In this document: positions 5,898 to 58,451 of the stretch, piece after piece
Layout of the letters: each line of letters opens with the position of its first letter
How positions within the stretch are numbered: the stretch's first letter is position 1
From: Blepharisma stoltei ATCC 30299
Taxonomy: Eukaryota; Protista; Ciliophora
Length of the DNA stretch: 64,000 bases
Reading direction: 5' to 3'
NCBI GenBank assembly: GCA_965603825.1
Contig: CBFDEM010000048.1
Location: 62,001 to 126,000 of the forward strand
Notes under the pieces: model-generated
Database searches by the model: none
The model's input: only the letters and a program-made list of their open reading frames with translations
What the model was told of the DNA's origin: nothing
Made by a program: the position numbers and the translations under genes

Positions 5898-7863
5898 TTA
5901 TTCGTGATAAAATGGAATTTTGAGGTATATTAGCATATGGTCAGTGTGCTTAAAGGTGATATAATTTGTGTGCTTGTAAGAAACGGATTAAATAGTGCTT
6001 TGTTGAGTTATGAAATAGATGTTTGAAATAATTTTTTTTTTATGTATAAATAAAATATCAGATTTTAATGCTTTTATTATATTTGGTCAATTTTTGTTTT
6101 AAAATATTAACTTTAAGTTTAATCTTGTTAATTATTACTAGAAAAAGTCGTAGTTATAATAATTGATCTTATAAAACATAATAATTTTTTATAGGGATCT
6201 CAAATGCCTATTGATTCTTGCTGAACAGTCTTAGCTTTCGCCAAACGAAGACTTTGGGTCCGAGATAATCATAGTTGAACTGCTTTAAGCATGATTTATA
6301 AGCTTAGTGAGTTGCATTATGATATGAGCGGCCTAGTCATATCACTCAAAGTATTAGTGTCAGTAAGGTGTGTAATATCCTAATAGCTTTCACTAGGATT
6401 TTTTACAACTCACTTAAGAATTTTTGATGCGATTTTAAAGGAAGTAAAACAACATTTGTTTAGATAGTTATATTTAAATGCTACTCTCTGGTTGCATAGA
6501 ATACGGTGCACTTAAGATTTCTCTAAATAAGGGACGAAACTGGGTATGAATTCTCTTTAGTTACCTTAAATTCGCCTTGCTCATAATAAAACAAAATCTT
6601 GGAGCCAATTTCTCTTTCAATATAAATCTTTAATTCTATATTTAATTATGAATTTAAAGAGCTATTTTTATTTGGAATATTATTATTTCTCAAAATGGTC
6701 TAATAATTTTCTTTAGTTTTCTCATTTAATTTGCAACCTCATTCATTTAAACAATCTTTGGACTGCAGGTCAAAGAGCAAAATTGATCTTTAATTATCAA
6801 TATTTTTATTCTAATCAAAATTTACTGCAGCAGGATTTTCCATCTCTACTGGTAAATACTGAATCTAATTTAGCTATTCCATTTTAATCGATATTAAGAC
6901 CAGATCTTTTCATCAAAAATGCTTTCTGTTGGTATATTTTTCGACAATCAAAGCAGAATTTTAGAAAAATTTAAAACATTTTATTGATAAGTTTATATAT
7001 TTACTCAATTTGAATCAAATAAATTTTTAATAAAATAAAAAATTAGAAGAATTAAAAAAAATATTTTGACATCCCACTTTTCAATTTTTTAAACTTATGT
7101 GGTCGTCCGTTTAATAATATTAGCTCCAATCATAATTTTAGTGCTGCCTTTAATTATGAGATCTGCAAAGCAGAAAAAAAATCACTCATAATCTCAGAGT
7201 AATTTAGAGATGTTTCAGCATGAATTATTTTTAGGCATTTAGAGTTTATTCTATTTAGCTTAAAATCACTTAAATAAAATGAATTTGAATAAATTCGAAA
7301 AAAGCCTTTGTTTTGAATTTATTTGTAAAACCAGGCTTAAAACTAATATTCTTGATATGATATTTTTTTATTTCGAAAAGGATTTATGAAGATTAAGCCA
7401 CCTGAAAGTTGTTTTGGAATTTTTTCAACTATTGAAAATTTTTAAAAAATAACTATTAGCAAAAGGGCCTAATTCTTTTATCTAAAAATCAAATTATTTT
7501 ACAGATTTTTAAATTTTTGATATTCAGCATTTATTAAATTAAGTGTCTTTCATGGTAAAAAATTAGTAAATTCGAGTGAAATAATTTAAGAAGAATTCAG
7601 AATGAATTAAAGTAAGAATTATCTAGAATAAATTTAGCTCTTCATTTACTTTTAAACTTCGAAGAATAAGTTGTAACGGTATTTATTCAAAAATCTGCAA
7701 TTTCAAAGATTTTTTTCAAATATCATTTGATTACTGTCTGAATTTTAAATCAATGCTCTAGCACTAAACCTAATTTAAAAAGTTGGCCTTTCTCCGTTTC
7801 TCAGATCAGCCATACATCCATAGTTATGTTCATATTTCTCAGTGAATATACCATTTTTATAAA

Positions 7864-9144
7864 ATGTCAGTATTTGAAAAACAAGACGAATTAGAAAGAG
7901 AATCAAATAAATTCTGGGCAAATACAAACTATTTTCCAGAAATAATCGTTATATTCAGAGATCAACTATATGAAAAGTCCAAAAATAAAGAAAAAAAGCT
8001 CATTGAAGCTATCCTCACCAAAGACTCTATTATTAAAACAAGCAAGAATTCTCTCTTCAAAGCAGCCTCAATTCAATGGAAATTAGTCACTCCATTTATA
8101 GAAGAGCAAAATGGCGAAACATTTTATGGCTTTACTTTGGGGCATAAAAATTGCAACCGTGATTTTTATGTTAATAATGAAAATTCATTAAACGATTGGA
8201 TCAACCATCTACAGCAATTCTGTATCATGACAGATTTTGATAATGATTTTGCCATTATTAAAGAGCTAGGAAAAGGGAGCTTTTCCAAAGTTTACCTTGC
8301 AGCAAACTGTTTAACAAAACAGATATATGCTGTCAAAGCAATAAGTAAAGAGACACTTTTTGAGAATTCTGTCAATTTTGTTAACCAAATTAATGAAATT
8401 GCCTTATTAAGAAAAGTGAATCATCCGAATATAATTAAGCTCCATATGGTATATGAGAACGAAGATTATATACACTTGGTTTTAGACTATGCTGAAGGTG
8501 GGGATCTCTATCAAAGAATACTTAAGAAAAATAGTTTTTCTGAAGCAGAAGCATCAATAATTGGGGCTAAGATGCTCGATATTTTAGAATATTTAGAGTC
8601 AATGCATATTGTGCACAGAGATATTAAGCTAGAAAATATTCTGTTGACATCAAAAGATAGAATAGATAACTTTATACTTGCTGATTTTGGGTTGGCAGAA
8701 GAACTAAAGGAAGAATCAACGAAAAAGTGTGGCTCGCCAGGCTATGTAGCTCCTGAAATATTAAGAAATCATTCTTACAGCTATAAAGTTGATGTATATA
8801 GCACCGGTATTGTTCTATATATTCTTATTTCAGGAAAAATGCCTTTCTTCGGGAGAAATTCCAAAGAAATACTAATAAAAAACAGAGAAGGGGTAATTAG
8901 TTTTCACAACCAAATTTGGAAAAATAAATCAAAAAATGCAATTGATGCTATTCTCAAGCTTACTGAAAAGGAACCAGAATTTAGACCAAGTCCTAAAGAA
9001 GCCTTCGCTCTTCCTTTTTTTAATAGTGTGACTATAAATAGCACATCATTGTCAAAATTAGACAGCCTTAAAACAAATTTAGACACCAGTCGAGCTAAAA
9101 ATGAGCCTTTTACATTATTACTAAGGAATGGCCATAAAAAGTAA
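7864..9144 (+). CDS. Ser/Thr kinase, CAMK group, with PH-like region (copy 2)
   Basis: Close paralogue of 4274-5569 with intact GKGSFS, HRDIKLEN, DFG and APE motifs. Confidence 0.93.
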   Translation: MSVFEKQDELERESNKFWANTNYFPEIIVIFRDQLYEKSKNKEKKLIEAILTKDSIIKTSKNSLFKAASIQWKLVTPFIEEQNGETFYGFTLGHKNCNRDFYVNNENSLNDWINHLQQFCIMTDFDNDFAIIKELGKGSFSKVYLAANCLTKQIYAVKAISKETLFENSVNFVNQINEIALLRKVNHPNIIKLHMVYENEDYIHLVLDYAEGGDLYQRILKKNSFSEAEASIIGAKMLDILEYLESMHIVHRDIKLENILLTSKDRIDNFILADFGLAEELKEESTKKCGSPGYVAPEILRNHSYSYKVDVYSTGIVLYILISGKMPFFGRNSKEILIKNREGVISFHNQIWKNKSKNAIDAILKLTEKEPEFRPSPKEAFALPFFNSVTINSTSLSKLDSLKTNLDTSRAKNEPFTLLLRNGHKK

Positions 9145-9543
9145 GTACAATCATAAATTAAAAATTTTGCCTACGACAATAGGAAATGATACCGAAAGCC
9201 AAATTTTAAAAGCTAATGTAATTAGACTTTTTTATTTAACTATGCAAGGCTTTCATAATTTCTATTTAACTATAGCAAGTCATAATAAAACTCAAGATGT
9301 GAAATCTTAGAACTTTCTTGTCGAGGCTCTTTTGCTCTCTATGGATAAAAGAAACTAGAGATATCGATTAAGGATAGATAATTTTCTAAAATTTCAAACA
9401 ATAATGTAAAATCGTTCTATTAAGGAATTAAGCAAGGATAGCGGAATTTTAGCCACAAAAACAAAATTTCAACGTTTAGACAAATTAATAAGCAATATAA
9501 AGGTTTTTATGATTTTTGAGTTCCATAATTTTTTTTAATATTA

Positions 9544-10980
9544 GTGAGTCTTTTAGAAGTAATGTGATTTACAAATCTAATTCAGGAATTTGAAATCAGT
9601 AGCTATCTCACTTGTTAAAAATACTTGGTTTTGCAGTTGGCCGCGATAACTGTAAAAGAATTTTTTACGTTGAAAGTCTTGAATTGCTGAAAGCGTGATT
9701 TAGCTTTCTCTCCAATTTGTTTTTGACAAATTTCGATGAAGATTTTGAAGTTTTAAAAAATTGAAAGCCGAGCTTCGGATCTTTTTTTATTACTACAAGC
9801 ACTGTAAATAGGAAGACTGCTCTGTAAAATCAATAAGCAAATTGAACCTGCGTGATAGCTAGAAAAAAATCAAATAATCTCACTCGTGAAATAAAAATAA
9901 TGAGGAAAATTGCTTATCCAAATATTGTCAAACTCCATTTTTATATGAAAGCCAGACATTATAAACTTACACTGATATGCATTTTATTATTTTATGATAA
10001 TTTCAAATTATTGAAATATAAGTTTAATTTTAATTTATTAAAGTAGAAAAAGTTGACCTGCAAAGTGCAGCTGATAATTGAATTAAAATTAAAAAAAATT
10101 AACTTATCAAAGAAATTAGCTTTGATAAATTAAATGGAAAAGCATTATTTTCAAAGAATTCTAATATAGCGCTTCAGAGATCGAGCTAGGTATTTTACTT
10201 AAAATAATTTTAACCAATAATCATTATCTTGATGTATAAATTTCAAAGAACTTGCTGTACTTTATCATTAATTATTTATTAAATTCTTATATAAGCTCAC
10301 ACAGAAATGTGGTTTTTATATAATGGAAGAATAAAAAAAAAACTTACCCTAATTAATAATATTTTTAGCTATATTAGTTTTAACTAAACGTTGAAAACAC
10401 AAGTATAGAGCTTTTAGTAAATTAATTTATAAAATTACAGAATTTTTCTCTTATTTGCTTAATAACATGTATGAGAGCTAGAAGAAAAATACCGTGGCAA
10501 ATTTGGCTATTAGACTATTAGATGCCATAAACTTTTTAAGCCAAATTAGCAATGCTCATCTTGATATCAAACTAGAAAATATTTTAATGACTTCGAAAAG
10601 AAATGATTACGATTTCAAATTAATTTTTTTTGAGCTGAGAATCCGCAAGTTAGATGTGGATCTTCTAGATATATATAACTTGAAATATTAGGAAGCTTGA
10701 TTTTTACGCCAGAGCTGATACATTTAGTGTAATGGTTGTTTTTTATATTTTATCATATGGCAAAATGCCATTTTTTGGAAGACACTCGGCTGAAATCCTT
10801 CAGAAAAATCGAGACTGCTTCGTTTCTTTCAATCCTAAAATATAAAAAAAACCATATCAAAAAATGCTATAAATTTCATTTTGAAATTAACTGATCCTAA
10901 TTACAGTGCAAGATCCTCAGCAAGTGATACCTTAAATTATCGCAGGGTCCAGCAACAAATAGATGACAGGCTTGCTTAAA
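9544..10980 (+). pseudogene. Decayed kinase paralogue with an AT-rich internal insertion
   Basis: Fragments in shifting frames with TAA/TAG stops: GFAVGRDNCK, TNFDEDFEV, EIKIMRKIAYPNIVKLH, HLDIKLENILMTSKRNDYDFKL, GKMPFFGR, NAINFILKLTDP. The DFG motif is lost. Boundaries are approximate. Confidence 0.82.
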
Positions 10981-23275: not shown

Positions 23276-23833
23276 CTAAAGTGGCTTTCCAGAACTTTTT
23301 GTCCTTCTATTGTATTTTCTTCTTACACCCGATGCTGGCTCATTTAAATAAGTTGAGGACTCGAAAATCTGATCAACTTGATTGACTATATCTAACGAAT
23401 CTTTTGTCAATGATAAACTCTTTTTAAGAATTTCATCATATTGTGAACTTTCTTTTCCAGAAATAATTTGTTCAACGTCGTTTCCTATTAAAACTTGATC
23501 AAGATTTTCATTTAATTCTTTAGCATCGCTTACTATTGTATTTTTGTCTCTTAAAGGTTTATCTTGAGAGTCATCAATCAGTTTTATAATTTCTTGTATT
23601 TCCTTTAGTTTTTTGCTTATATATTCCTGCTTAGCTTTTAAAATAATTGCTTTGTTTTTTTCTTTTTGTATTGCACAGATCTCGATCCCCTGTTTACAAT
23701 CAGATTTCACAGAATGCAAGCTATGAATTCTCAAAATTAGTTCAGCTCTTATTTTATCTAAGTCTGACAACTGCTCTGTACTTCTCATATCTGCTGCTAC
23801 TTTTCTCGTGCTTTTACTTGCACAAATGCCCAT
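23276..23833 (-). CDS. Helical protein with MGICAS acylation motif, possibly a divergent Vps20/CHMP6-like protein
   Basis: Clean 185-aa ORF with Gly2/Cys4 and a basic-then-acidic helical composition. The segment KEKNKAIILKAKQEY resembles Snf7 family helix 2, but the family call is weak. Confidence 0.55.
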   Translation of the reverse strand: MGICASKSTRKVAADMRSTEQLSDLDKIRAELILRIHSLHSVKSDCKQGIEICAIQKEKNKAIILKAKQEYISKKLKEIQEIIKLIDDSQDKPLRDKNTIVSDAKELNENLDQVLIGNDVEQIISGKESSQYDEILKKSLSLTKDSLDIVNQVDQIFESSTYLNEPASGVRRKYNRRTKSSGKPL

Positions 23834-43033: not shown

Positions 43034-45493
43034 ATGACAGAGGGCAGAGGAGTTGTATCTAAAAAGGAGCTATCTCCAGGCATCATCTTACACAAAGAAA
43101 TAATCCCAGGCAAAGCAGAAGGTGTAGAGTGCATTTATGAGTTTCGAGTTGAGCTTCAGAGATTAAATACATTGGAATTTACAGTTGATTTTACAGGCTC
43201 CAAAAATGTTTTACTAGACGGAGGGTCTGGGTTAGTAAAATCTACCATTGTTCAAGCTTTTGAAACAACTACAGTCGCAGTATTGAAAATGACTAGACAA
43301 TGGATGCTAAAATCAAAGTTTCGGTTCATAATCCGAGCAGCTCCACGTGCTCTCCAAGAACAATATTTAAAGCGAGAAATTCAAGACCTCAATGCAAAAA
43401 TAGAAAAATCCAAACAAATACTGTCTAAAATCTCAGTAAATTTGTCATCAGTACAAGAAATTGAGCAAGTTTTGACTCAAAAAGGTACGAATTTTCTTGA
43501 TATTGAATTCCCCCCTTTAGATGCGTCAATTTATAGAGAAGTTGATAAAGAGCCATTTGACCAGCTGGTCCATTGAAGAAGGCCAAATGAATTTTTTATA
43601 GTAGACTATGGAGAAGGGCTAAAAGACCCCAGAATCTTTTCTGAAGAAATTGAGCCTTATGATGTTCGCCAAGGACAGTTAGGAGACTCCTGGTTTATGA
43701 GTGCTCTTGCTTCATTAGCAGAAAGGCCAGCTTTAATTGAAAGACTTTTCATTACCAAGCAGGTGAATAGCATAGGGATTTATAGAATCAAATTATGTAA
43801 AAATGGAGAATGGGTCACTGTTACAATTGATGACTATTTTCCTTGCTTTCCGATGGGGCAGCCAATATTTTCAAGGGCTAATGGAAATGAGCTGTGGGTA
43901 CTTATACTTGAAAAAGCTTATGCTAAATTGCATGGACACTATTATTTGTTAAAAGGAGGGTTTGCGAATGAAGGGCTTATTGATTTAACTGGATGTCCAA
44001 CTGCCCAATTTCATTTTCACGACGAAGATATACAAAAACTTATAGAAAGTGGCCAGTTTTGGCTGATGATAAAGGATTTTGACGAAGAAGGGTACATTTT
44101 GTCAGCAAGCACTCAAGGCGAAGAAAGGTGAAACGAAGTCAATTTCCTTGGGACCTTAGAAGCTGGATTATTGCCTGGGCATGCTTATACAATTTTATCT
44201 ATCAAAGAAGCCCAAGGCAATCTTTTAATAAATTTGCGTAATCCATGAGGAAAAATTGACTGAAATGGTGACTGAAGTGATGGGTCAGCTGAATGGACTG
44301 CAGCCATGAAAAGAGAGCTAAACCCTGTCTTTGACGAAGACAACGGGAATTTTTGGATGAATTTTGATGACTTTATTCAGCATTTTTCAACCCTAAATGT
44401 CTGCAGAGTAAAAAACTGGGACGAAGTTAGAATTAAAGGGAAATTTATAAGGGTCCAAGACGTAGAAGACTCAAATATGGAAGTTGTCGTATCTAAGTGG
44501 TATTATAGCGTAGATTTACCTGAAAGGGTCAGGATTTTTATAGGGATTCATCAAGAAGATGAAAGGATTTTTGGGGTTGCTTCTAGAAGACAATATTTAG
44601 ACATAGGGATAGTGGTGCTTAAAAGAATGCCTGATGGGACAGTAAATTTGATAGAATCCAAAGATTTTAGCATTGACCGACAGTGTGAGATGGAGATTTT
44701 ACTAGACCCTGGATCATATATAATTTTGCCAAGGACTTCAGGATGCTTGCTAAGAAGGCCAACTGATGCAGTTCCTGAAAGAATAACTCTGCTTAACAGT
44801 AAAGGAGAGCTTACAGACTTAGCAGAATCCACGATTAATGATATTTTCAGAAAATTTGATATGCTCTTAAACAGAGAGCTTTCTTATACAGAATTTAAAG
44901 GGTTTTATGAGTGTATCAATAGGACTATAAGTGAGGTCGAGTATCGTCAAAAAGTCCTTAAAAAATATTCCTCAACTGAAAATGGGCTAAGCTTAAAAGG
45001 GTTTAAAGACTTTTTTATTGAAAATATCAAAGCTCAAGGCGAAGAGGTAATTTGGGGATGGCTTGAGAGCTTAGGATATGATAGAGAACTATACTCAGTC
45101 AGGTCACGGTGCTTTATTTTGACTTTTCATAGTGTCACTGAAATTTCAGTAACAGTCAGAGACGCCATCCAAACTGATCTAGATAACCGCACCAATGTAC
45201 TTTTAATAGAAAAACAAGGGACTGAGCTAGACAGCAAAACTGGGGTCAGATGTTTTTATTATTTATCCAAAAATGTCCATTGCTACTCATATGGTGTTTA
45301 TAATGAGCAGTCTCAAGCTATAGAAGTTACTTTAGACTGTGGAGGCTCTGATAGCATGGTTTTCAGTACTAAAGGATCATATGTGAAAAAAAGAATCGAG
45401 CCTGGCCAGCTTGAATTCATGCTCCATGCTATGGCAATTCCTAGTGCAGATACCTTTGTGAGATCAGCCAGATGTACATGGCATGCAGTTTAA
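43034..45493 (+). CDS. Calpain-family protein, 819 aa, catalytic Cys replaced by Ser; C2L and EF-hand-like regions
   Basis: FLDIEFPP, HWRRP, QGQLGDSWFMSALA, VTIDDYFP, ELWVLILEKAYAKLHG, GHAY, LRNPWG and GNFWM. Three ORFs are in frame via TGA=Trp. Confidence 0.92.
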
Positions 45494-45508: not shown

Positions 45509-46330
45509 ATGTCTAAAGATTATCATAAACTATACGCATCCAATGAAAACAGTGCTAGAAGCCTGAACTCTTATAAGAAAAAGCTGCTGAATGAAGAATC
45601 AGAAGTCACTGATATTTATCAGACCGAAAATGAAGGAAAACTTGATAAGTGGATCGGATATGAATCAGATGAAGAATCAGAACCAAGACAAAGACTAGAC
45701 TCAGAAAGTGAGGACGAAGAAAACGAAAAAAATGAAGAAAAAATAGTCCAAAGGGCTATTTTTGATGAAAATTCTGAAAAAGTCCAAGTAAGAGAAAGAA
45801 TTGGAAAAGCTGATGTAAAATGGCTTGGGGCGAAGCCAGATAGAACTGAAAAAATAATCACTAATAAAGAAGAATTGCAAGCTGGAAATATAATACATAG
45901 GGATAAGCAAGGCAGAATTTTAGAAGGAGGAATAAATAAAGAGCAGGAGCTGAAAAAGTTAAATGAAGAAAGACTAAATCAATGAAAAAGCGGAGCTGAA
46001 CAAAGGAAGGAAAAAGAAGATATGATAAGGAATATTAAAGCAGAAAAAAATAAACCATTTGCAAGATATGAAATTGAAGAAGACGCTGATCAAGAGTTTA
46101 AAACTAAAAAAAGATTTGGGGACCCAGCTTTGGCATTTCAAGAAAATAGACTAAAAAAAATGAAAACTGAATGCCCTTATAGCTGGGAAAATAGGTTTAA
46201 TATAAAGCCTGGGAGCAAATGGGATGGAAGAGATAGAAGTAATGAATTTGAAAGGAGATGGATGGCAAAACAAGGAAGAAAAGAATGGGAAAAAAGCTTT
46301 GTCTACAAGCAGTTTGCAAGCGAGTTATAA
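45509..46330 (+). CDS. BUD13: Pre-mRNA splicing factor BUD13/CWC26 (RES complex)
   Basis: IHRDKQGR, W(TGA)KSGAEQ, KPFARY, RFGDP and [22 protein letters not shown]. Confidence 0.9.
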
Positions 46331-46451
46331 ACAAAAATAAATAATTTGTAGATTTAAAAGATTCAAATATAGCTAATTTAGAACATTTCTAGCAGAGTTT
46401 AAATATGAAAATAGTCATTGCGGTTTCATTTTAATTTTAATAATAAAATAT

Positions 46452-46757
46452 ATGGGTGCTTGTTACGGAACTCAATCCAAATATATGAAAAATTCAAAGG
46501 TTTGCCATCACAAAAGTGATAGCGAGTATGAAGATGCATATGAGAAGCTTAAACTCCAAAGCAAAAGACAAAAAATTTTAGTTAAAAAAGCAATTGAAGC
46601 TCCGATGCTTAATCTTAGTGAAAATTCACTATATAAGAGAAGGACAATCCTACTACACAACGAGATTCAACCTTCAACAAGTGGATTTGATCATCTTACA
46701 AGGACATTTTCTTCAAGCTCAAGTGTAATAACTATTGAAAGCAAACACATACAATAA
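46452..46757 (+). CDS. MGxC acylated microprotein, family member A (101 aa)
   Basis: MGACY...KKAIEAPMLNLSENSLYKRR; shares its core with five neighbours. Confidence 0.8.
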   Translation: MGACYGTQSKYMKNSKVCHHKSDSEYEDAYEKLKLQSKRQKILVKKAIEAPMLNLSENSLYKRRTILLHNEIQPSTSGFDHLTRTFSSSSSVITIESKHIQ

Positions 46758-48794
46758 ATGTTATATAACGTTAATTAATGTTTATATAATAGAAGTATGA
46801 AATTAATTGAATAATTGGCAATTCATTTCATCTACAATTTGGATTGTTATGAAATAAACTTAAATATCTTTATCTAAGGCTTAATATTCATATAACTGCA
46901 TATGGTAATTAATTAAAGATATTGATTCTTTAATCAAGCCTCTTTGATAAAGTTTAACAGATTTTTTTTGGATTTCCTAGTCATATATATTTAAATAATG
47001 GAGTAATGCGTTACAATATTTTAATAATTAGAAGGATAAAGAAGATTAAAATATCTTAAATTTTATACTGATTATTTTAATTACGGTTTCATTTTTATTT
47101 TCAAGATCTTTTATTATGAAATTTCTTAGTTTTAAATGTACTTATTTTTATATAAATTTCCTTATATAGCTTATTCGTATTTCAGCTTTACGATTTTTTG
47201 TAATAAATATCTTAAAAGATGAAAACAAATAGAAAAATTATATGTTCGGTATTTTGTAAATAAAATACATTTATTCTATTTTTGCTCTTTACTAATGGTT
47301 TAGGCAAAAACATCTAAGAAGTGAAAACTCAAGTTATTTGATAAATAGTTGATAAAATTAATACCCTATAAATAACCATCTTACATACAATTTTGGTATG
47401 AATATGGAAATAGCTTAGTTAAAACTTAAAGCAAGCTCCTTTAATATTTTCTGAAAAATTGGCTATATTAGCAAGGACTTTCATAGTGAACCGAAGTTTT
47501 TCAATAATTTTTATTTTTAAGAAAGAGACTCTCTCGCTATCTCTAAGAATTAAAGTATAACTACTCGAAATCAGAAAATAACCCAGTTTCTGCTTTTAAA
47601 ATAATCATTGAAAGCAGAAAGACCTATTGCATCATTGGCAATTGATTAAATACCTGACTGAATAATAATAATGATCATTATATCTAATTTATAACATATT
47701 CTTAAGAAATAGAAAGCTAGCTTTCTGTTCTCTTCTCATTCGGCTTAATTCTTAATAAATTTATTTCTTTTAACATTGCTATCTAGATAATCAATATCAT
47801 TAACGTTTTGCTGCGTGTTCAATCTAATTCTAGACTCCATATTAAATGCGATAGAAAAGCCAATTTGAATAAGAAATCCTAATAGTCAATTTTTTAGGAA
47901 TGCTCAAGTAAAGTCTTTCCTTCTATGAAGACTGTAATTTTTTCATCAAAAATCTAATTATGCTCTGATTACTTACATTTCATATTAAATAAAGGTTTAT
48001 TGATTATTAGGCTTCTTGACAGTTTTAAAAAATTAGGCTCTTCTCTCAAGACCTATAATTGGCAGATTTATAAAGAAGTTAAGCAGAAATTACAGAAATA
48101 TCATTAAACCTAATGGTTTTTCGGATCGAATGAGATTTATGAAGTTTTCTCCTAACAAAAAATAAATTAAAATAATAGGAAAATTAGCTATTTTTGGAAA
48201 TTGTAAGAAAATATAAACAATAAAATACGAATGAGTCTCATAGACTCTCTCTTCATTATTTAGAGTATATTTAAGATTTTTTCATAATTTATCTTAAATC
48301 TAATGAAAATAGTTACTTTAATAGCATAAAAGCCTAAGAATTAAATTTGAGATAAACTTGCTCATTTAATCACCTGAATAAAAACCCGCAAGGTAATTTT
48401 TATTAAAATTTTTAAAGTCCATTTTGAAAATTATTCAATTAATATTCACCACGATTTTTATTGTAAATTCAAGGAAAGAAGCGATTACTCTATCAAATCA
48501 AAACTCAAAAATTATTCAACAAAAAATTTTTAAAATTGTTTTGAGCATTAAAATACTGCCAATTGCTTCAAATTTACTTAAATCCAGATTTTTATAAAAC
48601 TGAAAATTTTTATTCACAGTTATAAAGCATATGGAAATTTATAAGTAAAAGACTTAGACGTATAATTAATCTCAAAATTCTATAAAATGCATTTTTTTAA
48701 CCTGTCAGCTTACAGCCAGCGTCGGTTTTCATTTGATAAAATCGAGTTTATTTTTGATTACCATTAAATCTCTTCAAGCATATATTTAAAACAA

Positions 48795-49061
48795 ATGGGT
48801 TCGTGCTACGCTAAACAAGAGAAAAGTGCCAAAACCGCAGTCGAACCCACCGATCAATGGAAATCCGGCAACAGAAATTTTCGTCTAAACCGTCGTAAAG
48901 AATTTATAATACAAATGCAAATTATTTATCATCGAAAAGCAGCTGAAGCGCCTATATTGACAATTAATAAAAGCAGCTTGTATCATAAGCGATTAAATAA
49001 GGCTCAAAGTTTGTCAAAAAATGAGAATTTGTATCAAAATCAGGCTGTCAGCTGTTTCTAG
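48795..49061 (+). CDS. MGxC acylated microprotein, member B (88 aa)
   Basis: MGSCY...RKAAEAPILTINKSSLYHKR. Confidence 0.8.
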   Translation: MGSCYAKQEKSAKTAVEPTDQWKSGNRNFRLNRRKEFIIQMQIIYHRKAAEAPILTINKSSLYHKRLNKAQSLSKNENLYQNQAVSCF

Positions 49062-50531
49062 GCTTCATTACAATATCATTAATAATTTAAACTAACAAAA
49101 ATTGATTTAAACGGGCTTTTTCATTGCTTTCTCTCTAATTGCTAATATCTACTTTAGACCTACAAAATAAAAAGATGTTTTACTATATTTTGAGCATCGG
49201 GAAGAAATAATAAAATGGATAATATTCTCAGATTATATAAAACCTTCAAGATAGGGGATTTTATAGACTGAATTACTTCAAAAATAGCTCTTTATTTAAT
49301 ATTTAGACTTTAGAAATGCTTGGTAACACTTTTTAGGAGAAGAATCACTTTATTTTAAAAATTATATTCCCTGAATATTTCTTAGTAGCAATTCAAAATC
49401 TATCATAAAGGCATTAATATTATTATAAATATTTTAAACTGAAAATAGCAGCAAGCTTTAATGCAGACCTTATTACTTGCCCGCCATATTCTTTGATAGT
49501 TTTGCAAATATTTCTATCAATCAAATTCTATAAGGCTTATCAAGCAAGGACTTGAGTTATGACAGTTTTTACTTTAAATAGATATTTAGTCAAGCTGAGA
49601 AGATATAATTTCATTAATTCAAGCCAGTTGGGTATATCTTATAATAAAATTTTATTATTTCATCAAATAAAACCTAATTCTTAAGATTTTATATCATATT
49701 ATCAGTTTTAGTAAAAGAGAACATCTTTAAGTAAGTAAAACTGGCTTTATAATTTGTATTGTTATAATTTGCAAATATGGGATTAAAATTAACTGCAATT
49801 TTTTAATAAAGAACGTAATTGAGTTTAACACAAAGGCTGTATCTCTTAAAATTAAAAAATGCATTATAAAAATTAGAACGCATATTATTTTAAATTATTA
49901 TTTAACTATATTTAAGAATAAATTTGAACCTGGTTTAAGTTTTACATTTATTTATAAGTTGTCTTTCAAAGCTTTTAAGCATCTTTCTTTAAGCACTGTT
50001 TATTAAAATATAAAAGATAAAATATGTTTACTTAGTTTGCTCACTTGATAAAATATCAGTATAAGAGTTGATAAAGAAGTCAATATTACTTCACTGTCTA
50101 TAATTACGTATGACGCAGCAGGCTACGACTTTTTAGCTAAATCATAGAGCTGATTTTCTTTATAATACTAACTTCATTGTAAAAAAACTTTATGGATTTG
50201 CGCATTATGTTTATCTAATACTATATCCTATTTAATTTTCTCAAATTACTCAGAATTTTTTTATTCGGAAATATATAAATTAGGCTATCTCTTTGTCAAT
50301 AATCTTTTTATTATTTGGCAATCATAGAAGCATTAGATCGCTAAAGAATAAATACTTCACAGCAGGATCATTATTTATTTTAACCCAAAACTTTTTTTTC
50401 TTATGCTTGAATTTTCTAAAATATTTTTCGAAATTTTTATTTTCATATGCTCCTTTCAATATAAATCCTCCTTTAGTCCACACTGAAATTTTATCAAAAT
50501 GGATTTAGAAACCATTGAAATAATCTAATTC

Positions 50532-50834
50532 ATGGGAGTTTGCTGCTCAATGAGATTTGACTTAAAAGAACCCAGTGATAACCTCCAGATGAAGAGAGCA
50601 AGACCACTAAGAAACTCAAAGTTGGATTTAAATAGCCAAATCATAATCCAGAAAGAACTTGTAATCAAAAGAAAAGTGCTGAATGCGCCTAAATTAAAAC
50701 TAGACGAAAATCCTTTATATAAAAAGAGACTATGAACCCAAACAAGTTCGTCTGTGAGCCGAAATTTGACTCCAACAAGAAGTTTGGATAATATATTGGA
50801 CACAGGTTCTCCTTCTTTAGTCTCTCCACTATAA
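50532..50834 (+). CDS. MGxC acylated microprotein, member C (100 aa)
   Basis: MGVCC...RKVLNAPKLKLDENPLYKKRL-W(TGA); stop TAA 50832-50834. Confidence 0.8.
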
Positions 50835-51709
50835 CACAAGACTAACTTATTTAAAATTAAAAAAGCTGAATTTTTAAGGGATTTTTAAATTCCCTCTATT
50901 GAAATACAAAATGTTTTTATTATTATTTTATATTCGACGAGTATTCAGTAAGGTCTTTTTTAAATTTTATCCTTTGGATTTATCAAATTGCTAAAAATAA
51001 TCATTAAAAGTAAAAAAATTTGAGCATTATACGAGCTAAATAGTAGACTAAGTATATTAGTAATTACATTTAACTTATAAGGCTTATTAAATAATAAAAA
51101 TTTTAAGATTTACAAAATTGTAAAATTCTTCATTAAGCTGGCTTGCTAAGATAGGCTAAAATTTTTTGCAAAATGGATTATGGTATTTAAAACCTTTCTT
51201 AATATTATAGCTTTAATTATGAAACTGGAATTTTGAATAATAAATAAAACCAAAAAATTGATAAAAAAATATTAGATTGCTTTATAAGTAAGATTTTTTA
51301 CTGGGCTGTAAAAATTATCGTTTATTGAAATTTCATGTAATCGAAAAATATGGAGATTTTACGATAGCATCAAAAAAAAAGGCGAAAGTATCGCACAAGA
51401 ATGAAGTAAAAAATTGCAATACAGGCGTTGCTTTAGAAAATTTGGTTTCAGACTTAATTTAGCAATATTTCACATAGAATTTGAATTTTGATTAGCAGGG
51501 CAAAGATAATAGGGCGCAACAGAAGCAGGTGAAATCTTAAATAAATTTTAGAGATAAGTGCTTCTTAGCAATGATAGCCTATAGTTTATTAGTAATAATA
51601 AATATATAATCATTTTAAGAGTCTTATGCTGCTTAGATTTTATACTAAAATTTTCCATTTGTAAATTCCAGATAATTCCATTAAGTTACAAAATTTTGGT
51701 GGCAATAAA

Positions 51710-51994
51710 ATGGGTTCATGCTACAATACAAATAGAAGGAAGACAAGTGCTTATGCTTTAAAAGAACTTTCTGATTATGAGAAGCTAAAGTTGAACTCAC
51801 GGCACCGATTCTGAAGCAATAAAGCTCAGACGGCTCCAGAATTAAAGCTAAGCGAAAATCCTTTGCTTTTAAGAAGAAAGCTTCGATATCAAGAAAGTCA
51901 ACAGACTCAATGCAGTCAGATGGACTTAATGTCTCCTTCAATATCTTCCCAATATCTCACTGGATCATTGAGTCCAGAATTATTAAATTATTAA
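51710..51994 (+). CDS. MGxC acylated microprotein, member D (94 aa)
   Basis: Not in the ORF track. MGSCY...YEKLKL...F-W(TGA)-SNKAQTAPELKLSENPLLLRR. Confidence 0.8.
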
Positions 51995-52328
51995 TTTAAA
52001 CCTTTGTAAGTAATCTATCCAGTTTCACCTTAGGTAAAATTCCAGCTTAGATATAAAAAGGGTTTTAAAAAATTTATTGGTCTCCTGGACTATTGGCTTA
52101 ATTTCTAAAAATGTCCTATTAAGTCTTAAAATTGAAATATAGTTGCAATATATGAATATTAAATTTCGATCAATATACTTCATAGCTCGTCTGTAATTTT
52201 AGTTAAATTGCAAAACCATCAAAGTTTTTAAAATTATCAACTTAGGTTTGGAGAAAAAATATACAGATCATCATTTTAAAAATTCAATTCTTAATCCCTT
52301 ATTACCCCCCTCATCTATGAATAATAAT

Positions 52329-52409
52329 ATGAGGGACAAGTGGAGGAAGAAAAGGATGAGACGTCTCAAAAGAAAGCGACGAAAGATAATGCAAAAGGCT
52401 AGCCCTTAG
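52329..52409 (+). CDS. RPL41: Ribosomal protein eL41/eS32, 26 aa
   Basis: Translation MRDKWRKKRMRRLKRKRRKIMQKASP* matches the RPL41 consensus. An in-frame upstream ATG at 52317 could add MNNN. Confidence 0.9.
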   Translation: MRDKWRKKRMRRLKRKRRKIMQKASP

Positions 52410-53111
52410 CGAATTTCACAGAGTAAGATCTAATTAATTTTGCTGATAGATATAGATTGAACCATTGAAAAGCTAGAGAGTTGACTAGGCTTATGTTGAA
52501 ATCCACATGCTGTAATCAGAGAAATAATAAACCATTTTAAATTCCTAAAGAACTTTTCCACATTGTTTATGGATCTAATCCCTAAAACATTTATAGTTAC
52601 TTAAGACAGAATGAATTAATCTAATAGAATCCATGATTTCATTTGCTGAATCTGCCTTATTCTTGGTTCAAAAAGCTTCTCAAATTTTTTTAAAAAGCAA
52701 CTCTTTTAGAAAGATAACAGTAAAAATTCAAAGCTTACATCATAATAATTAATATTTTTAACAAAACAAGCAAATGCACTGTTAAATTGAATTCAATTAT
52801 TTTTTATTATCTCCTAAACTTTTTATTAATATTTTAGTTTTGCGGATAGCCAGTGTAGGGATGTAAATAAAAAAAGGTACAGCTTCTTCATCATACCTTA
52901 TAAAATTTAGGGATGATCTTTTCATACTGCATTAAAAAAAGCTCTTAGCTTTACACAAATTGGAGCTAAATGGAAAGCTGGCTTTTACACTATAAAATGG
53001 CATACAATATATAAGCTCATGATGAAAAAATTCTATATGATAAAAGTTTAAATTAATCCAAAAAAATCCAATCAGACGCATATATATTTAAGAAATATTC
53101 ACGAGTTAAGA

Positions 53112-54098
53112 TTAAGGATAAATAATTTTTTGCCTATTTTCCATATATCTCTGGGTCAATATCGTCCTCCCATCAATTCCTTCACTAATAACTTTTTCTG
53201 TATCATTTTTTCCAAGCTGCACCTCCCACTCCAAATTTGTTTGATTAAAATCAAGAGGCACTATTCCGCCTGGCATATTTACGCTTGGGAAAACTACATA
53301 TCTGTAATTCACGTCTGGCCAAGCTGCCATTGCATTATAATAAAACCACATTTGGCCATCATATCCATTGATATCATGAACGCGCTTGAGGACATCTAAA
53401 GTAGTCATATTAGTTTCTGGTGGAAGTGTATAAGGCATGCAGTCAAATATTAAGTCTACTGTAATTTGTGATTGGCTTGGGACTACATCAAGACATCTTT
53501 CTACAGCTGCAAAAACGTCTTGATTTATCATAACACCGCCATCAACCCATGTGCTTCCTTGAAAATTAACTGGTGGGAAATACCATGGAGGGCATGCTGA
53601 ACATGTAATCGCTGTAAGTAAGCCTTCAAGCCCTAAAGATTCATTGAATTGGCCATATATACCTGTATCTAAATTGGTTGAGCCGACTGTAACATTTCGA
53701 TTAACCCCATATATGTATTTTTGATGCAAGGTGTTTACAAGAGGCTTGGTATTGTACAAGCCTCGTTGGAATAAAATTCCTTCAAGAAGGCCACCTTCCC
53801 ATTCAACATAAACGCTCGATGAGCCGTTAAGTGTAAGCCAAGTATTTACTAAAAAGTCTGCCATGGCTTTTTCATTGCCAGGCTTGAATTGGGCTACACC
53901 TCCTGCATTGAGTGCTCCAGTTGAAACTCCGGTTACGACATCTCATGAGATATTGACTGGAGCTGTATAAGCAATTTGCCAAAGAGACCCTGCTTCGAAT
54001 GCCCCATAACTTCCGCCACCTTCTAAAGAAACTGCATAACAGTGAGGATCTGCATAAGCTAGAGAAAGAAAAGAAATTAATATCCCGAGTATTGCCAT
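53112..54098 (-). CDS. Secreted patatin-like phospholipase, 328 aa
   Basis: Signal peptide, oxyanion motif LEGGGSYGA, nucleophile GVSTG and catalytic DGG. One TGA=Trp lies upstream of the track ORF. Confidence 0.9.
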
Positions 54099-54436
54099 TA
54101 TTTCTCCAGGTACAAATATTTGTATTAGATGAGCAATACTCTAATGAATAATGTGTGAAGTAAAAATTTTAGTTATTGATGAGAAATTAAATTAAAAATT
54201 TTTAAATTTCGATGCCAATTAGAGATTTATAAACTAAATATTTGAAATTGTGGAAAAAATTGAAAAGTTTTGCTTAAATACTTAATTAAATTGATTTTTT
54301 ATAAGTTCGCCATGTGATTGGAGGACTAAAAGATGGAATCAATATTTTATGAGTATTTTCATAATTAAAATTTCTTCAAATGTATAGATTAGACTTCATA
54401 TGCATAATAATCAGTCAAATGAATTTTAAATAAATA

Positions 54437-54676
54437 ATGGGATCTTGCTGTGGGTCAAATAATACAAAAATTGCTCCATCTAAAAATGATCAAAATACTA
54501 GCACAGCAGGAAAGCGAAGGTCAAGCAAGCTGCAAAAGTGATTGAAAAAGATGAAAATAGTTCCAAAGCTTCATAAAGCTCAAGATAATCCTTTGTTTAT
54601 AAGAAGGAAAATTTCAAAAAATAAAGATTTTAAACTAGATGATTTAGTAGACGTGCATTACGTCTCAACAAATTAA
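54437..54676 (+). CDS. MGxC acylated microprotein, member E (79 aa)
   Basis: Not in the ORF track. MGSCC...QK-W(TGA)-LKKMKIVPKLHKAQDNPLFIRR. Confidence 0.75.
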
Positions 54677-56100
54677 TGTTAATTATTTCAAAATTTCAAG
54701 ATTATTTGATTTTAATTTTTGTTTTGAGGAGTATTTTTGAATTTAAGCAAAATTAAGCGATTAATTATGGCTTTTAAAAAAATATAAATGAAGAGTTCTA
54801 TTTGTCACTTTTTATTTGCTTGATTTCATTTAATTTTTATCAGAGCCCATGCTATGCAAAAAGTGATTATTGAAACACTTAATTTATAGTTATTCCAAGG
54901 CTTTCAGTATTATAAAGTCTTGATATCTCCTTTCTGATATTGTGAGAAATTCTAAAATTTATCAAGGGCACTCTAATTTATGATGAATAGGCAACTAAAA
55001 TACTCTTTAAACCATATTTTTTGGCTAACCAAATTTCTCCATAGTAGCTATAGAATCTAAAAATGTATCTGATATTGGAACCAAATAATATTTTTCTTCG
55101 GTGATCCAGTTATCTTTAATTTCCTATCTCAAAATGAATTATCAATATTGAAACTTTTAAGCTCTTTTCAGATTAAATTTTGCATTAAGCTGAAATCAGG
55201 TAATACACAAATAAAGCAGAGACATAGTGCTCCTATCAGTGCCATATTTTAAATATATATATAAAATTACAGCTTAATGAAGTATAGCTTGTTCAATTTT
55301 AGCATAGTAGCTTCAACTGATTTTTGAGCTTTATTTTGTCTAGCAAAAAGATTGTGCCTTCATTCTACATAAAATTATTATCATTTGCAATTGTACAAGA
55401 CTGTATTCTTTTGTAACTCTAAAACTATAACACAAAAGGCATAATCACAGCATTATTATTTACATACTTCAGAAAATTATTCTTTTTATCAAATAATAAG
55501 CCAAGTATAAATCTTATTTTTCAATTATTTGGCATCATCCAACAGGAGAAAAATCATCATAGCATTAACTTTTTAAGGCTAAATCGAGGCTTGCAGTCTT
55601 AAAAAAATTGCTGATTTACCAGAAAGCAATAAAAATAATTGTATTAGTCAATTTGGTTAGTGTAAAAATGCCTATTCAATTAGCTAAAGCTATTTTAAAA
55701 GAAAGCTTTCAATTTTTATTTTATTCGGATTATAGACAATAAGAAGAGGCCATTAAACTTCAAGTAAGTTAACTACTTATCACCTTAATAATATTTTCAA
55801 TCAACATTTAAAGTTCCTCGAGTAAATACAAATAATAAAATTATGTTTTCTTCAACTAAATTTAGCGATAGTTTGATATCATATTTTCAACTTAGGGTCA
55901 AGAAATTTAAATCTAATAAATATTTAATTAAAAATATGTTTCAATATCAGTTGCAAATTTTTATTGCTAAAGACTCAATCTCCTCTTCCCTTTCATTTTT
56001 CTTTTGGAAATTTCTTCTTAGTTAAATGATTTTTATAAATACCTCTGAACGACATTTAATATCATGGAAAATCATTGGATTTTAAATAAAAGCAAAAAGA

Positions 56101-56373
56101 ATGGGTTCATGCTGTGCCACTGAAAAGGGCAAGGTTTTACCTTATGTTTTAGATGTCCATGTGCAATGCACACCTTGCGATAATACCAAGCAAGAAATTA
56201 AAAAGAAGATGTGGGTCCAAAAAGCCAAAAATGCACCAAAACTTAATATCAATTCTAACCCTCTATATAAAAAGAGGATGAGTGAAAATCTTACCAGGAG
56301 CAGTCGGACAAGCTTAATATCTAATGAAAGAGCTTCGAGGACGGCTTCTTGCTCGCTGTTATATGGGTTCTAG
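56101..56373 (+). CDS. MGxC acylated microprotein, member F (90 aa)
   Basis: MGSCC...MWVQKAKNAPKLNINSNPLYKKR. Confidence 0.82.
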   Translation: MGSCCATEKGKVLPYVLDVHVQCTPCDNTKQEIKKKMWVQKAKNAPKLNINSNPLYKKRMSENLTRSSRTSLISNERASRTASCSLLYGF

Positions 56374-57383
56374 TGTACAATGTTTAATGTAACTAATTTT
56401 CAGATATTTAAATTAAACTTGTGACCTCTCGTTTGTGATTTCATTGAAAAGATCCAAGTATTATAAATAGACCATGAATTCCATTTACAAAACAGAAAAC
56501 CCAAACCCCAAGCATAACGATTCAAGGATTATGCTTTAGAGGAATAGGAAAAACGTCATAAAAATAAATATAGTAATAATATGATGATTAATGCCCAGGC
56601 TTGAGGGGAGAAAAATTATTAATATGAATAGTTCATAAAATTAAGCTATGAGTTATACTGAATTTAGATTAAAAGATTGCTAGACTCCTTTTATAGAGAG
56701 AATCTTTTACTTATAGTTTTGTTCAGTATCCTCCGTAAAAATGGCTTTAAAGTTGACAAGCCTATGCATTTTATAATTTAAGTCGAAATTATGATTAATA
56801 TAATTAATTTCGAAAAATTAATAGTTTGCTTATATTCGCATCAGCAAGTTTAGCTGTGCAGACTATTTTTGGATTGGGATAGTTAATTGTCTCCCAATTG
56901 AAGTTATTAATCTACTTTAATATCATTATTTATAACTCTTCAGCTATCATTTATTTAATTACTCAACCCAAAGAACATCCAGCATTCAAAAACTTACGTT
57001 TATGAGAAGATATGCAAAGTTTTGGATGCTAAGCGATCTATTTAGCTTGTGTCTTTTGTTATAATTAATCCAAAAAATTATCGCTTAAAGGTTATGAATA
57101 GTTTAGACTCTTTGAAATATCTTTATAGCACATTTAAATATAGAAAGCTTCAAGATTTATTATCCTATTATGGATTTCATCAAGCTTCTCCTTGGTTTCG
57201 CCATTTATATTATTCATATGATAAGCCTGATACAAAGACCAGGCTCTTTTTTTAAAATTTCTCAAAGTCCTGTGCTTCCTAGCTATTCATTTCCAAATTT
57301 TTAAGCTTGTCTATTATATTAGGTATTTCTCATTAGTCATAACAAACTTTAAAAGTTATTTAAAATTAGAAATAAAAATAATT

Positions 57384-58451
57384 TTATAAATTCATGTCAA
57401 CAACCAACTGTGGGCCAAGAGAAGCTCCAATAATCTCAATATTTTTCTCATTCGCAAAATGTCCAGGCCAATAATGGCATGAAGGAACTTCATCAGGAAG
57501 TAGTCCCAGCGATTTATAAGCTGACGCAATCAATTCAGAACAAAAAAAGTTCTTTTCATGCCCAGGCTTTAAATTTTCTCTCTTTTTGAATATTTTTTGT
57601 GGAGTAATTTTGTATCCTTTTCCTTTCACTTTATCAACAAAATCACTTAAAATGTCAAGCATTTTTTGATCCCTTTCTATGTTTAATTTTCTATATACAA
57701 TTCTTGAGTACAATAAGTGTCAATTATACATTAAAAAATCGTCCCAAAATACTATACCGACTCCGTCAAGCCCTGTAGCTTCTAATAGCCCAATCTTGCC
57801 TGAAGAATAACATAGAAGCATTGCAACGTGGTCAAATTTGCTTCGAGTGAGGACTCTTTGCACTTTCGCTGCAATATTTTTGCTTCTAAACAATAAAATA
57901 TCACCCGTTGAAGCTGATTGCCTGAACTGGGCGTCAGAAATCCTGTCAAATTTTCAAAATTCTTTCTTTTGGTTTAAAGTAGCCAAATCCTTCTTTTTGC
58001 CTTCTGACGAATTTATATGAAAATGTAAAGCAAAAGCCCAGTCTGCGAGCTCTTGGGAAGATTTTGCTTTAAGTTCAAGAATCCGTTTTGATCCTAATGG
58101 GAGGATTATTATCGAGCTTGGGCTAGTTGGGTTTATAACTTGTACGTCAACTGTAACTAAATCAAAGTTTATTACGAATGCAGGCTGGTTATCAGTGCTT
58201 TTTCTGTAGTAATATAGTTTTTTGTCCTGCAACACGAAATATCTTCATTGCCAATGATGAAACAGATTTTTTGACCTTTTCTTTAATCAGCCGTCTTTTC
58301 GAGAAAGGTCTGCAGAGGCTGCAAAAGTATTGAATGAAATGTTAGCTTTATTATTTTTAGGAGGGCTTGTATAGGAAAAGCGTCTTTTAGGAGGGTTCTC
58401 AGTGTCAAATAAGGGGAAAGGCTGAAATTCAGATCCAGTTTTGATTGCCAT
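57384..58451 (-). CDS. PH domain fused to permuted papain-like NlpC/P60 (YiiX/YaeF-like) domain, 355 aa
   Basis: PH part: DG-W(TGA)-LKKRS...W.WRYFVL...LKAKSSQELADW. Enzyme part: GDILLF, FDHVAM, LLEAT, FFCSELIASAY, with His preceding Cys. Confidence 0.83.

Follow-up and report, generated by a model that had tools for sequence, protein, structure and literature searches.

Heterotrich ciliates (Stentor, Blepharisma and Spirostomum) serve as models of ultrafast contraction, regeneration and patterning in single cells, processes whose organisation lies at the cell cortex. In mammals, AKAP7-alpha (AKAP18-alpha), a protein of 81 aa, is myristoylated on its N-terminal Gly, doubly palmitoylated at nearby Cys and equipped with one short helical docking module that it keeps at the membrane. 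Alveolates are known to use dual acylation to direct proteins to the cortical alveoli, the ISP proteins of Toxoplasma being an example (for context, see PMC4337574). The present analysis concerns a 64,000-nt stretch of macronuclear DNA from Blepharisma stoltei (C48:62001–126000, hereafter the window) and an array within it of six small plus-strand open reading frames (ORFs), designated members A–F. Judged from their sequences, the encoded proteins are members of a previously undescribed family that falls among the lipid-anchored small scaffolds, a known class, and the family is interpreted here as a set of membrane-tethered adaptors that probably share one docking module.

Results

Six related coding sequences in one array

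The published macronuclear genome of B. stoltei consists of 64 telomere-to-telomere contigs carrying 25,711 genes, with short intergenic regions, introns of 15–16 bp and UGA reassigned to tryptophan (PMC9942806). With UGA read as Trp throughout, as the nuclear code of this species requires, the six plus-strand ORFs proposed in an initial annotation of the window were all recovered with the coordinates, lengths, N-termini and cores described there (Table 1); TGA-containing ORFs were entered into the searches as TGA-free pieces, and no joined or spliced model was used. Neighbouring members start 1.18–2.73 kb apart and, when A–F are aligned, K, P, L, L and R are invariant in a shared core. Scored against a profile of 124 family sequences from which the window's own proteins had been excluded, the members reached 57.1 (A), 57.6 (B), 50.6 (C), 56.5 (D), 35.1 (E) and 62.8 (F) bits, compared to per-member maxima of 5.7–11.6 bits for shuffled sequences of identical composition (300 per member, 1,800 in total), placing the motif similarity far above chance in the shuffling control that the initial annotation had asked for. 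Member E is the outlier, with VP in place of AP, one additional residue in the loop and a K in place of L/I after the invariant Leu, and it is also the weakest match in the genome-wide search (E = 6.8e-6 with a broad 129-sequence profile). The YEKLKL box that had been noticed in members A and D is real and is carried by their paralogues on a second contig (C47) as well, and member C is present at full length in a public protein set (P0040).

Sequence comparison shows that members A–F encode proteins and are held by purifying selection. The ORFs of A, D and F share 68–71% DNA identity with sequences of a second array on C47, in alignments that reach up to 27–40 nt upstream of the ORFs, while the spacers of the two arrays give no DNA alignment at all and hold no other conserved ORF of ≥25 aa. 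For the closest paralogue pairs (NG86 method), the nonsynonymous rate (dN) was 0.12–0.42 and the synonymous rate (dS) exceeded 1 and was saturated, with dN/dS of 0.04–0.34. Less saturated is the comparison of the Stentor coeruleus gene SteCoe_20966 with a near-orthologue from another run (dN = 0.08; dS = 0.19–0.38 and dN/dS ~0.2–0.4, depending on the method), in which the replacements fall outside the core or at two variable core positions. Values in these ranges agree with the earlier proposal of an old paralogous family held by purifying selection. A conserved Trp column is encoded by TGG in member F and TGA in its C47 paralogue, and by TGA in member D and TGG in its paralogue. Contig counts were considered as a proxy for expression and rejected as uninformative, a housekeeping protein of B. 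stoltei (P0163) being found on only two contigs.

A 41-gene family with a sister array

Within the 41.46-Mb assembly of 64 contigs, a profile built from A–F alone retrieved 35 further genes (E = 4e-21 to 4e-4), giving B. stoltei a total of 41 intact family genes and one fragment (C47:669371–669496); the 129-sequence profile returned the same set. All 41 genes start with MG-x-C and all end in TAA (n = 34) or TAG (n = 7), with TGA never used as a stop. The array of six described initially is real and is one part of a 41-gene family that includes a 13-gene sister array.

The sister array (C47:651973–672998) holds 13 family genes and the one fragment, is split by two larger ORFs at C47:664412–666556, and has one member (668175) on the strand opposite to the others. 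It is collinear with the window array, but inverted. For members A, B, D and F the nearest relative lies within this sister array, and the pairs follow in matching order: A with C47:672732 (45% identity, dN/dS = 0.31), B with C47:667139 and C47:661512, D with C47:653996 (52% identity) and F with C47:651976 (64–65% identity), the last of which bears the public name 'unnamed protein product [Blepharisma stoltei]' (P0002). Both arrays adjoin paralogous genes of 355 aa, at 57384–58451 (-) in the window and at C47:649850–650917 (+), and a PH domain is present in the window copy. Given the matching order of nearest relatives and the paralogous flanking genes, an array with at least four distinct subtypes predates a segmental duplication that is itself old, its synonymous sites being saturated. 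On this reading, the family grew through tandem duplications, and a later event copied the entire array.

Relatives in Stentor and environmental assemblies

A profile search against 1.84 billion representative proteins gave 190 matches at E ≤ 1e-3. Among the 150 of these that were listed, all are 59–118 aa in length (the family median is 78 aa), have the same layout and are complete proteins to the stop codon. Approximately 40 of the 150 are genes of B. stoltei and, since that genome holds only 41 family genes, the remaining matches come from other organisms. When 30 match clusters from outside the window were sampled, one was found to hold the Stentor coeruleus protein OMJ79068.1, a 'hypothetical protein', and the others consisted of unnamed proteins from metagenomes and Logan assemblies; 'unnamed' and 'hypothetical' were the only public annotations encountered for any protein of the family. 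It was the exhaustive profile search alone that revealed the wider family: a word-based protein search with member F found only F itself and its C47 paralogue, and one with a 129-row profile found seven proteins. Standard-code ORF calls would, in addition, miss members in ciliates that read TAA/TAG as Gln.

The environmental contigs with family members are gene-dense and eukaryotic. One metagenome scaffold (L049, 25% GC) carries four tandem members on the same strand at 5988–10306, spaced 1.1–1.6 kb apart, which start with MGGC or MGSC and form a subfamily with an added helix, 'LMLREQVM(R/K)AK'. Two other contigs of 51–54% GC hold one member (L048) and two adjacent members (L051). The dihydrolipoyl dehydrogenase encoded next to the L048 member has its best named match in B. 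stoltei (68%), compared to 53–57% for other eukaryotes including Euplotes, which points to a heterotrich or a close relative as the host. On the strength of these occurrences the family is regarded as at least heterotrich-wide. A DHHC palmitoyltransferase gene (L048:5902–6891) lies 2.7 kb from the L048 member, with EF-hand genes beside it; this proximity is probably a coincidence, as both gene families are very abundant in ciliates.

A near-universal dual-acylation signal

N-myristoyltransferase requires an uncharged, non-aromatic residue other than Pro at position 3 and a small residue or Ser/Thr at position 6, and a Cys beside a myristoylated Gly is a site of S-acylation. The anatomy of the family was tallied over 162 sequences that start with MG, out of 165 matching the core; the other three look N-terminally truncated. 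Gly follows the initiator Met in 162 of 162, as in all six window ORFs and all 41 B. stoltei genes. Cys occupies position 4 in 156 sequences and occurs somewhere in positions 3–7 in 158. Residue 3 is S, V, I, N, L, A, C, T or G, each acceptable to N-myristoyltransferase, in ~159, residue 6 is S, T, G, C, A or N in 131, and a Lys or Arg lies within residues 7–10 in 142. The resulting N-terminal pattern is MG-x-C-x-[S/T/G/small], usually followed by Lys or Arg. Because the tallies at Gly2, Cys4 and residues 3 and 6 fit both the specificity of N-myristoyltransferase and S-acylation of the Cys, the N-terminus carries a canonical dual-acylation signal that is near-universal in the family, extending to the family as a whole the Gly2-plus-Cys signature first remarked upon in the six window members. 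A C-terminal Cys or prenylation box is present in 19 of 173 sequences, about the level of chance.

A conserved core between variable linkers and tails

The conserved core spans ~30 residues and follows the pattern [RK]xx[IVL][FYW]xxK-A-x-N-A-P-x-L-x-[LI]-xx-[NS]-x-L-[YF]-x-[KR]-R. Positions are numbered from the Pro (0), and the regular expression used for selection, which matched 165 of 168 sequences, itself fixed the Pro, demanded an [RK] at +13 and confined each of the other positions listed to a wider choice of residues. Upstream of the Pro are [RK] at -12, I/V/L (92%) at -9, F/Y/L/W at -8 and K (96%) at -5, followed by A/D/I/V at -4, N/K at -2 and A (80%) or V at -1. Downstream are L (99%) at +2, L/I (98%) at +4, divided between Leu (65%) and Ile (33%), N (67%) or S (33%) at +7, L (90%) at +9, Y (82%) or F (12%) at +10, R/K (82%) at +12 and R at +13. 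The linker from Met1 to the core Pro is 34–70 residues long, basic and poorly conserved, and the pre-core region as a whole contains 12% K and 7% R. The tail after the core measures 2–52 residues (median 18), is composed of 15% Ser and 8% Thr, and is conserved within subfamilies only, for example between member F and its paralogue.

From the family alignment, AlphaFold2 modelled the core in two independent runs, for members F and A, as a helix, a loop of 9–10 residues and a second helix. In member F the helices span residues 28–43 and 54–66 around a loop at 44–53, with a predicted local confidence (pLDDT) of 96–97 over the block; in member A the helices span residues 24–49 and 59–72 around a loop at 50–58, with pLDDT of 93–98 over residues 31–70. 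The N-terminal 25 residues and the tails have pLDDT of 57–78. A single-sequence ESM Atlas model was poor (pLDDT = 0.40), and the confidence of the AlphaFold2 models therefore comes from the alignment.

The impression that the sequences fall in no named family was upheld. Pfam returned no match for A–F, and 0 of 129 members scored above the gathering thresholds, with no Pfam family common to more than one of them. A sequence-profile search of the PDB gave 0 matches at E ≤ 10, and in the ESM Atlas nothing rose above noise, with shape searches at TM ≤ 0.44. Literature searches turned up no paper dealing with the locus tag of the Stentor gene or with small acylated proteins of heterotrichs.

Spacers and neighbouring genes

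The spacers between the members (Table 1) measure 0.9–2.0 kb and have a GC content of 24–27%, compared to 32–40% for the family ORFs. ORFs of ≥100 aa cover 15% of positions 46400–57300 of the window versus 64–80% on the flanks, and 0–3% of the C47 array versus 70–84% around it; the spacers of the environmental array on L049 are apparently ORF-poor too. Such long spacers are atypical for a genome with short intergenic regions; they may reflect independent regulation of the members, as the initial annotation proposed, or may be long UTRs. The spacers yielded no Rfam family, tRNA, repeat or decayed copy of a family gene, and the window as a whole no Rfam family or tRNA.

The CGGTTTC sequence located upstream of member A also occurs 31–37 nt upstream of both A-type paralogues on C47 (668138, +; 673030, -) and may serve the A subfamily as a promoter element or as part of the 5' leader. 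An orphan copy at 47069–47101, in the spacer 300 nt downstream of A, precedes nothing more than a 17-codon ORF; it may have been left behind by a duplicate since lost, a hint of gene birth and death within the array. A gene for ribosomal protein eL41 sits inside the array, between member D and a patatin-like phospholipase gene, and the latter has no counterpart in the C47 array. The in-frame TGA codons of two genes upstream, for a calpain-type protease and a Bud13 homologue, are consistent with UGA as Trp. Elsewhere in the window (23279–23833, -), an ORF of 185 aa starts with MGICASKS and looks helical, but it shows no relation to the family core, and Pfam gave no match for it.

Table 1. Features of the array and its surroundings, in window coordinates.
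Feature	Position	Strand	Description
Calpain-type protease gene	43034–45493		Upstream of the array; in-frame TGA codons
Bud13 splicing-factor homologue	45509–46330		Upstream of the array; in-frame TGA codons
CGGTTTC element	46406–46438	+	CGGTTTC 31–37 nt upstream of the ATG of member A
Member A	46452–46757	+	101 aa; MGACYG start; core aa 35–64 (nt 46554–46643)
Spacer	46758–48794		Almost ORF-free
Member B	48795–49061	+	88 aa; MGSCYA start; core aa 37–66 (nt 48903–48992)
Spacer	49062–50531		Almost ORF-free
Member C	50532–50834	+	100 aa; MGVCCS start; TGA (Trp) at codon 68; core aa 37–66 (nt 50640–50729)
Spacer	50835–51709		Almost ORF-free
Member D	51710–51994	+	94 aa; MGSCYN start; TGA (Trp) at codon 35; core aa 27–56 (nt 51788–51877)
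Ribosomal protein eL41 gene	52329–52409	+	MRDKWRKKRMRRLKRKRRKIMQKASP; in ORF 52248–52409; Pfam Ribosomal_L41, E = 1.3e-7
Patatin-like phospholipase gene	53112–54098	-	Pfam PF01734, E = 2e-13; interrupts the array
Member E	54437–54676	+	79 aa; MGSCCG start; TGA (Trp) at codon 35; divergent core aa 27–57 (nt 54515–54607)
Spacer	54677–56100		Almost ORF-free
Member F	56101–56373	+	90 aa; MGSCCA start; core aa 30–59 (nt 56188–56277)
Spacer	56374–57383		Almost ORF-free

Discussion

The reading favoured here, to which we assign a rough probability of 0.55, is that the family is made up of adaptors, dually acylated and tethered to a membrane, with one docking module in common. Gly2 would be N-myristoylated during translation and Cys4 then S-palmitoylated, and with this double lipid anchor the protein would be held stably at a membrane, of which the plasma membrane, the cortical alveoli and the cilia are the most plausible. 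The linker would keep the helix-loop-helix module near the bilayer, where the module would bind one conserved partner common to all paralogues, and differences between paralogues in location, in regulation or in a second partner would stem from the divergence of their linkers and tails. Several observations weigh against this interpretation. No co-conserved neighbour gene was found, and no fold match was obtained either with Foldseek against the PDB (at E ≤ 0.001) or with VIA-align over 48,161 chains (best Z = 2.8). The predicted TM score (pTM) of the AlphaFold2 models is only 0.41–0.43, and the modelled helix-loop-helix may be a fold adopted only on binding or may reflect helix propensity driven by the alignment. 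Further, the pre-core helix is strongly basic; were it to bind lipids directly, some of the conservation would be accounted for with no need of a protein partner.

It is along these lines that the main rival arises, in which the proteins are electrostatic membrane organisers of the MARCKS/BASP1/GAP-43 type, with the anchors and the basic helix binding acidic phospholipids directly. The core would then be a membrane-interacting hairpin, and release would follow from phosphorylation of the tail or from Ca2+-binding proteins. The basic composition of the pre-core region, the invariant or near-invariant basic residues at -5, +12 and +13, the Lys or Arg that follows the acylated N-terminus in most members and the Ser/Thr-rich tails all fit this alternative. 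However, a core with near-invariant A-P, L, [LI], [NS] and L-[YF] set at constant distances is far more specific than electrostatic lipid binding calls for, and in a visual inspection of the sequence logo the hydrophobic and basic residues do not separate into clean opposite faces of the helix. There is also no enrichment of Ser/Thr next to the [KR]R pair (0.04–0.22 per position versus 0.146 overall; 162 sequences). An organiser of this type is accordingly considered unlikely, though it keeps some weight.

A bolder version of the adaptor interpretation would make the core a heterotrich-specific, membrane-proximal docking domain, in which lipid anchors combined with a helix-(A-P-x-L-x-L)-helix recruit to the plasma or alveolar membrane a single conserved cortical component (for example part of the machinery for contraction, ciliary rows or Ca2+ handling in these giant cells) and the ~40 paralogues set different cortical addresses. 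A claim of this reach is doubtful at present, and is ranked a little below direct lipid binding.

Less likely again is the reading, developed from a suggestion made when only the six window members were in view, that the core is a short linear motif (an NPxY or a basic pseudosubstrate) for a kinase, a phosphatase, calmodulin or a PTB-type or other adaptor. The [KR]-R that follows L-Y does resemble the recognition element of basophilic kinases, RRxS-type sites are present in some members (e.g., 'LYQRRAS' and 'LYSRRLS'), and P-x-L-x-[LI] is superficially like the PxIxIT docking motif of calcineurin. The NPxY motif itself does not hold up, since its Pro is present in only 18% of the 162 sequences, is absent already from window members A and B, and is preceded by a position shared between Asn and Ser; the element conserved at this site is [NS]-x-L-[YF]-x-[KR]-R. 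A conserved basophilic phospho-site after [KR]R was rejected for want of Ser/Thr enrichment: just 38 of the 162 sequences have S/T one or two residues beyond the basic pair. PxIxIT was likewise rejected: the ELM pattern has beta-branched Ile/Val at positions 3 and 5, whereas the family has Leu at position 3 in 99% of sequences and mostly Leu at position 5. Nor does the extent of conservation suit a short linear motif, as it covers ~30 residues including the upstream helix, modelled as part of a helix-loop-helix and reaching beyond a typical linear motif. For the kinase, phosphatase and calmodulin variants there is nothing specific in support.

Finally, it is highly improbable that the ORFs are spurious, first exons of longer genes or upstream ORFs rather than independent small proteins, for while the surrounding DNA is unusually AT-rich and ORF-poor, dN/dS is well below 1 with conservation confined to the ORF, the 150 relatives listed are complete without exception, none of the members is continued by an ORF downstream, and the public annotations of B. 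stoltei and Stentor already include gene models for members of the family.

If the adaptor interpretation is correct, a 41-copy, lineage-specific family of lipid-anchored proteins of ~80 residues would offer ready-made markers or adaptors of the cortical membrane. More generally, the case shows that ciliate proteins of <100 aa can make up large families that are under selection and yet escape the domain databases. The present value of the family lies in a well-defined and easily testable hypothesis, its function being inferred from sequence and not a demonstrated mechanism.

Comparison with known systems

The ISP1–4 proteins of Toxoplasma are, like the present family, small, paralogous, alveolate proteins predicted or known to combine Gly myristoylation with Cys palmitoylation. 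They differ in being ~150 aa in length and in having a folded PH-like domain and an MGN..C.C start, and homology was not detected, with no Pfam match and blank sequence and fold searches of the PDB. The trypanosome calflagins share the N-terminal myristoyl/palmitoyl signature and a possible location at the flagellar or ciliary membrane, but they are EF-hand Ca2+-binding proteins, whereas neither an EF-hand nor any other Pfam domain characterises the 129 family members. MARCKS, BASP1 (CAP-23) and GAP-43 resemble the family in being acylated, largely disordered, basic, Ser-rich and membrane-associated; their basic effector domain is loosely conserved, in contrast to the sharp core of fixed spacing in the heterotrich proteins, which lacks a conserved phospho-acceptor. 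The best architectural analogue is AKAP7-alpha, and the likeness is one of architecture alone. It has no sequence relationship with the family, the listed matches of the profile search being exclusively ciliate-type proteins of 59–118 aa, and the docking modules themselves are distinct: an RII-binding amphipathic helix in AKAP7-alpha, and in the family what is modelled as a helix, an A-P-x-L-x-[LI] loop and a second helix.

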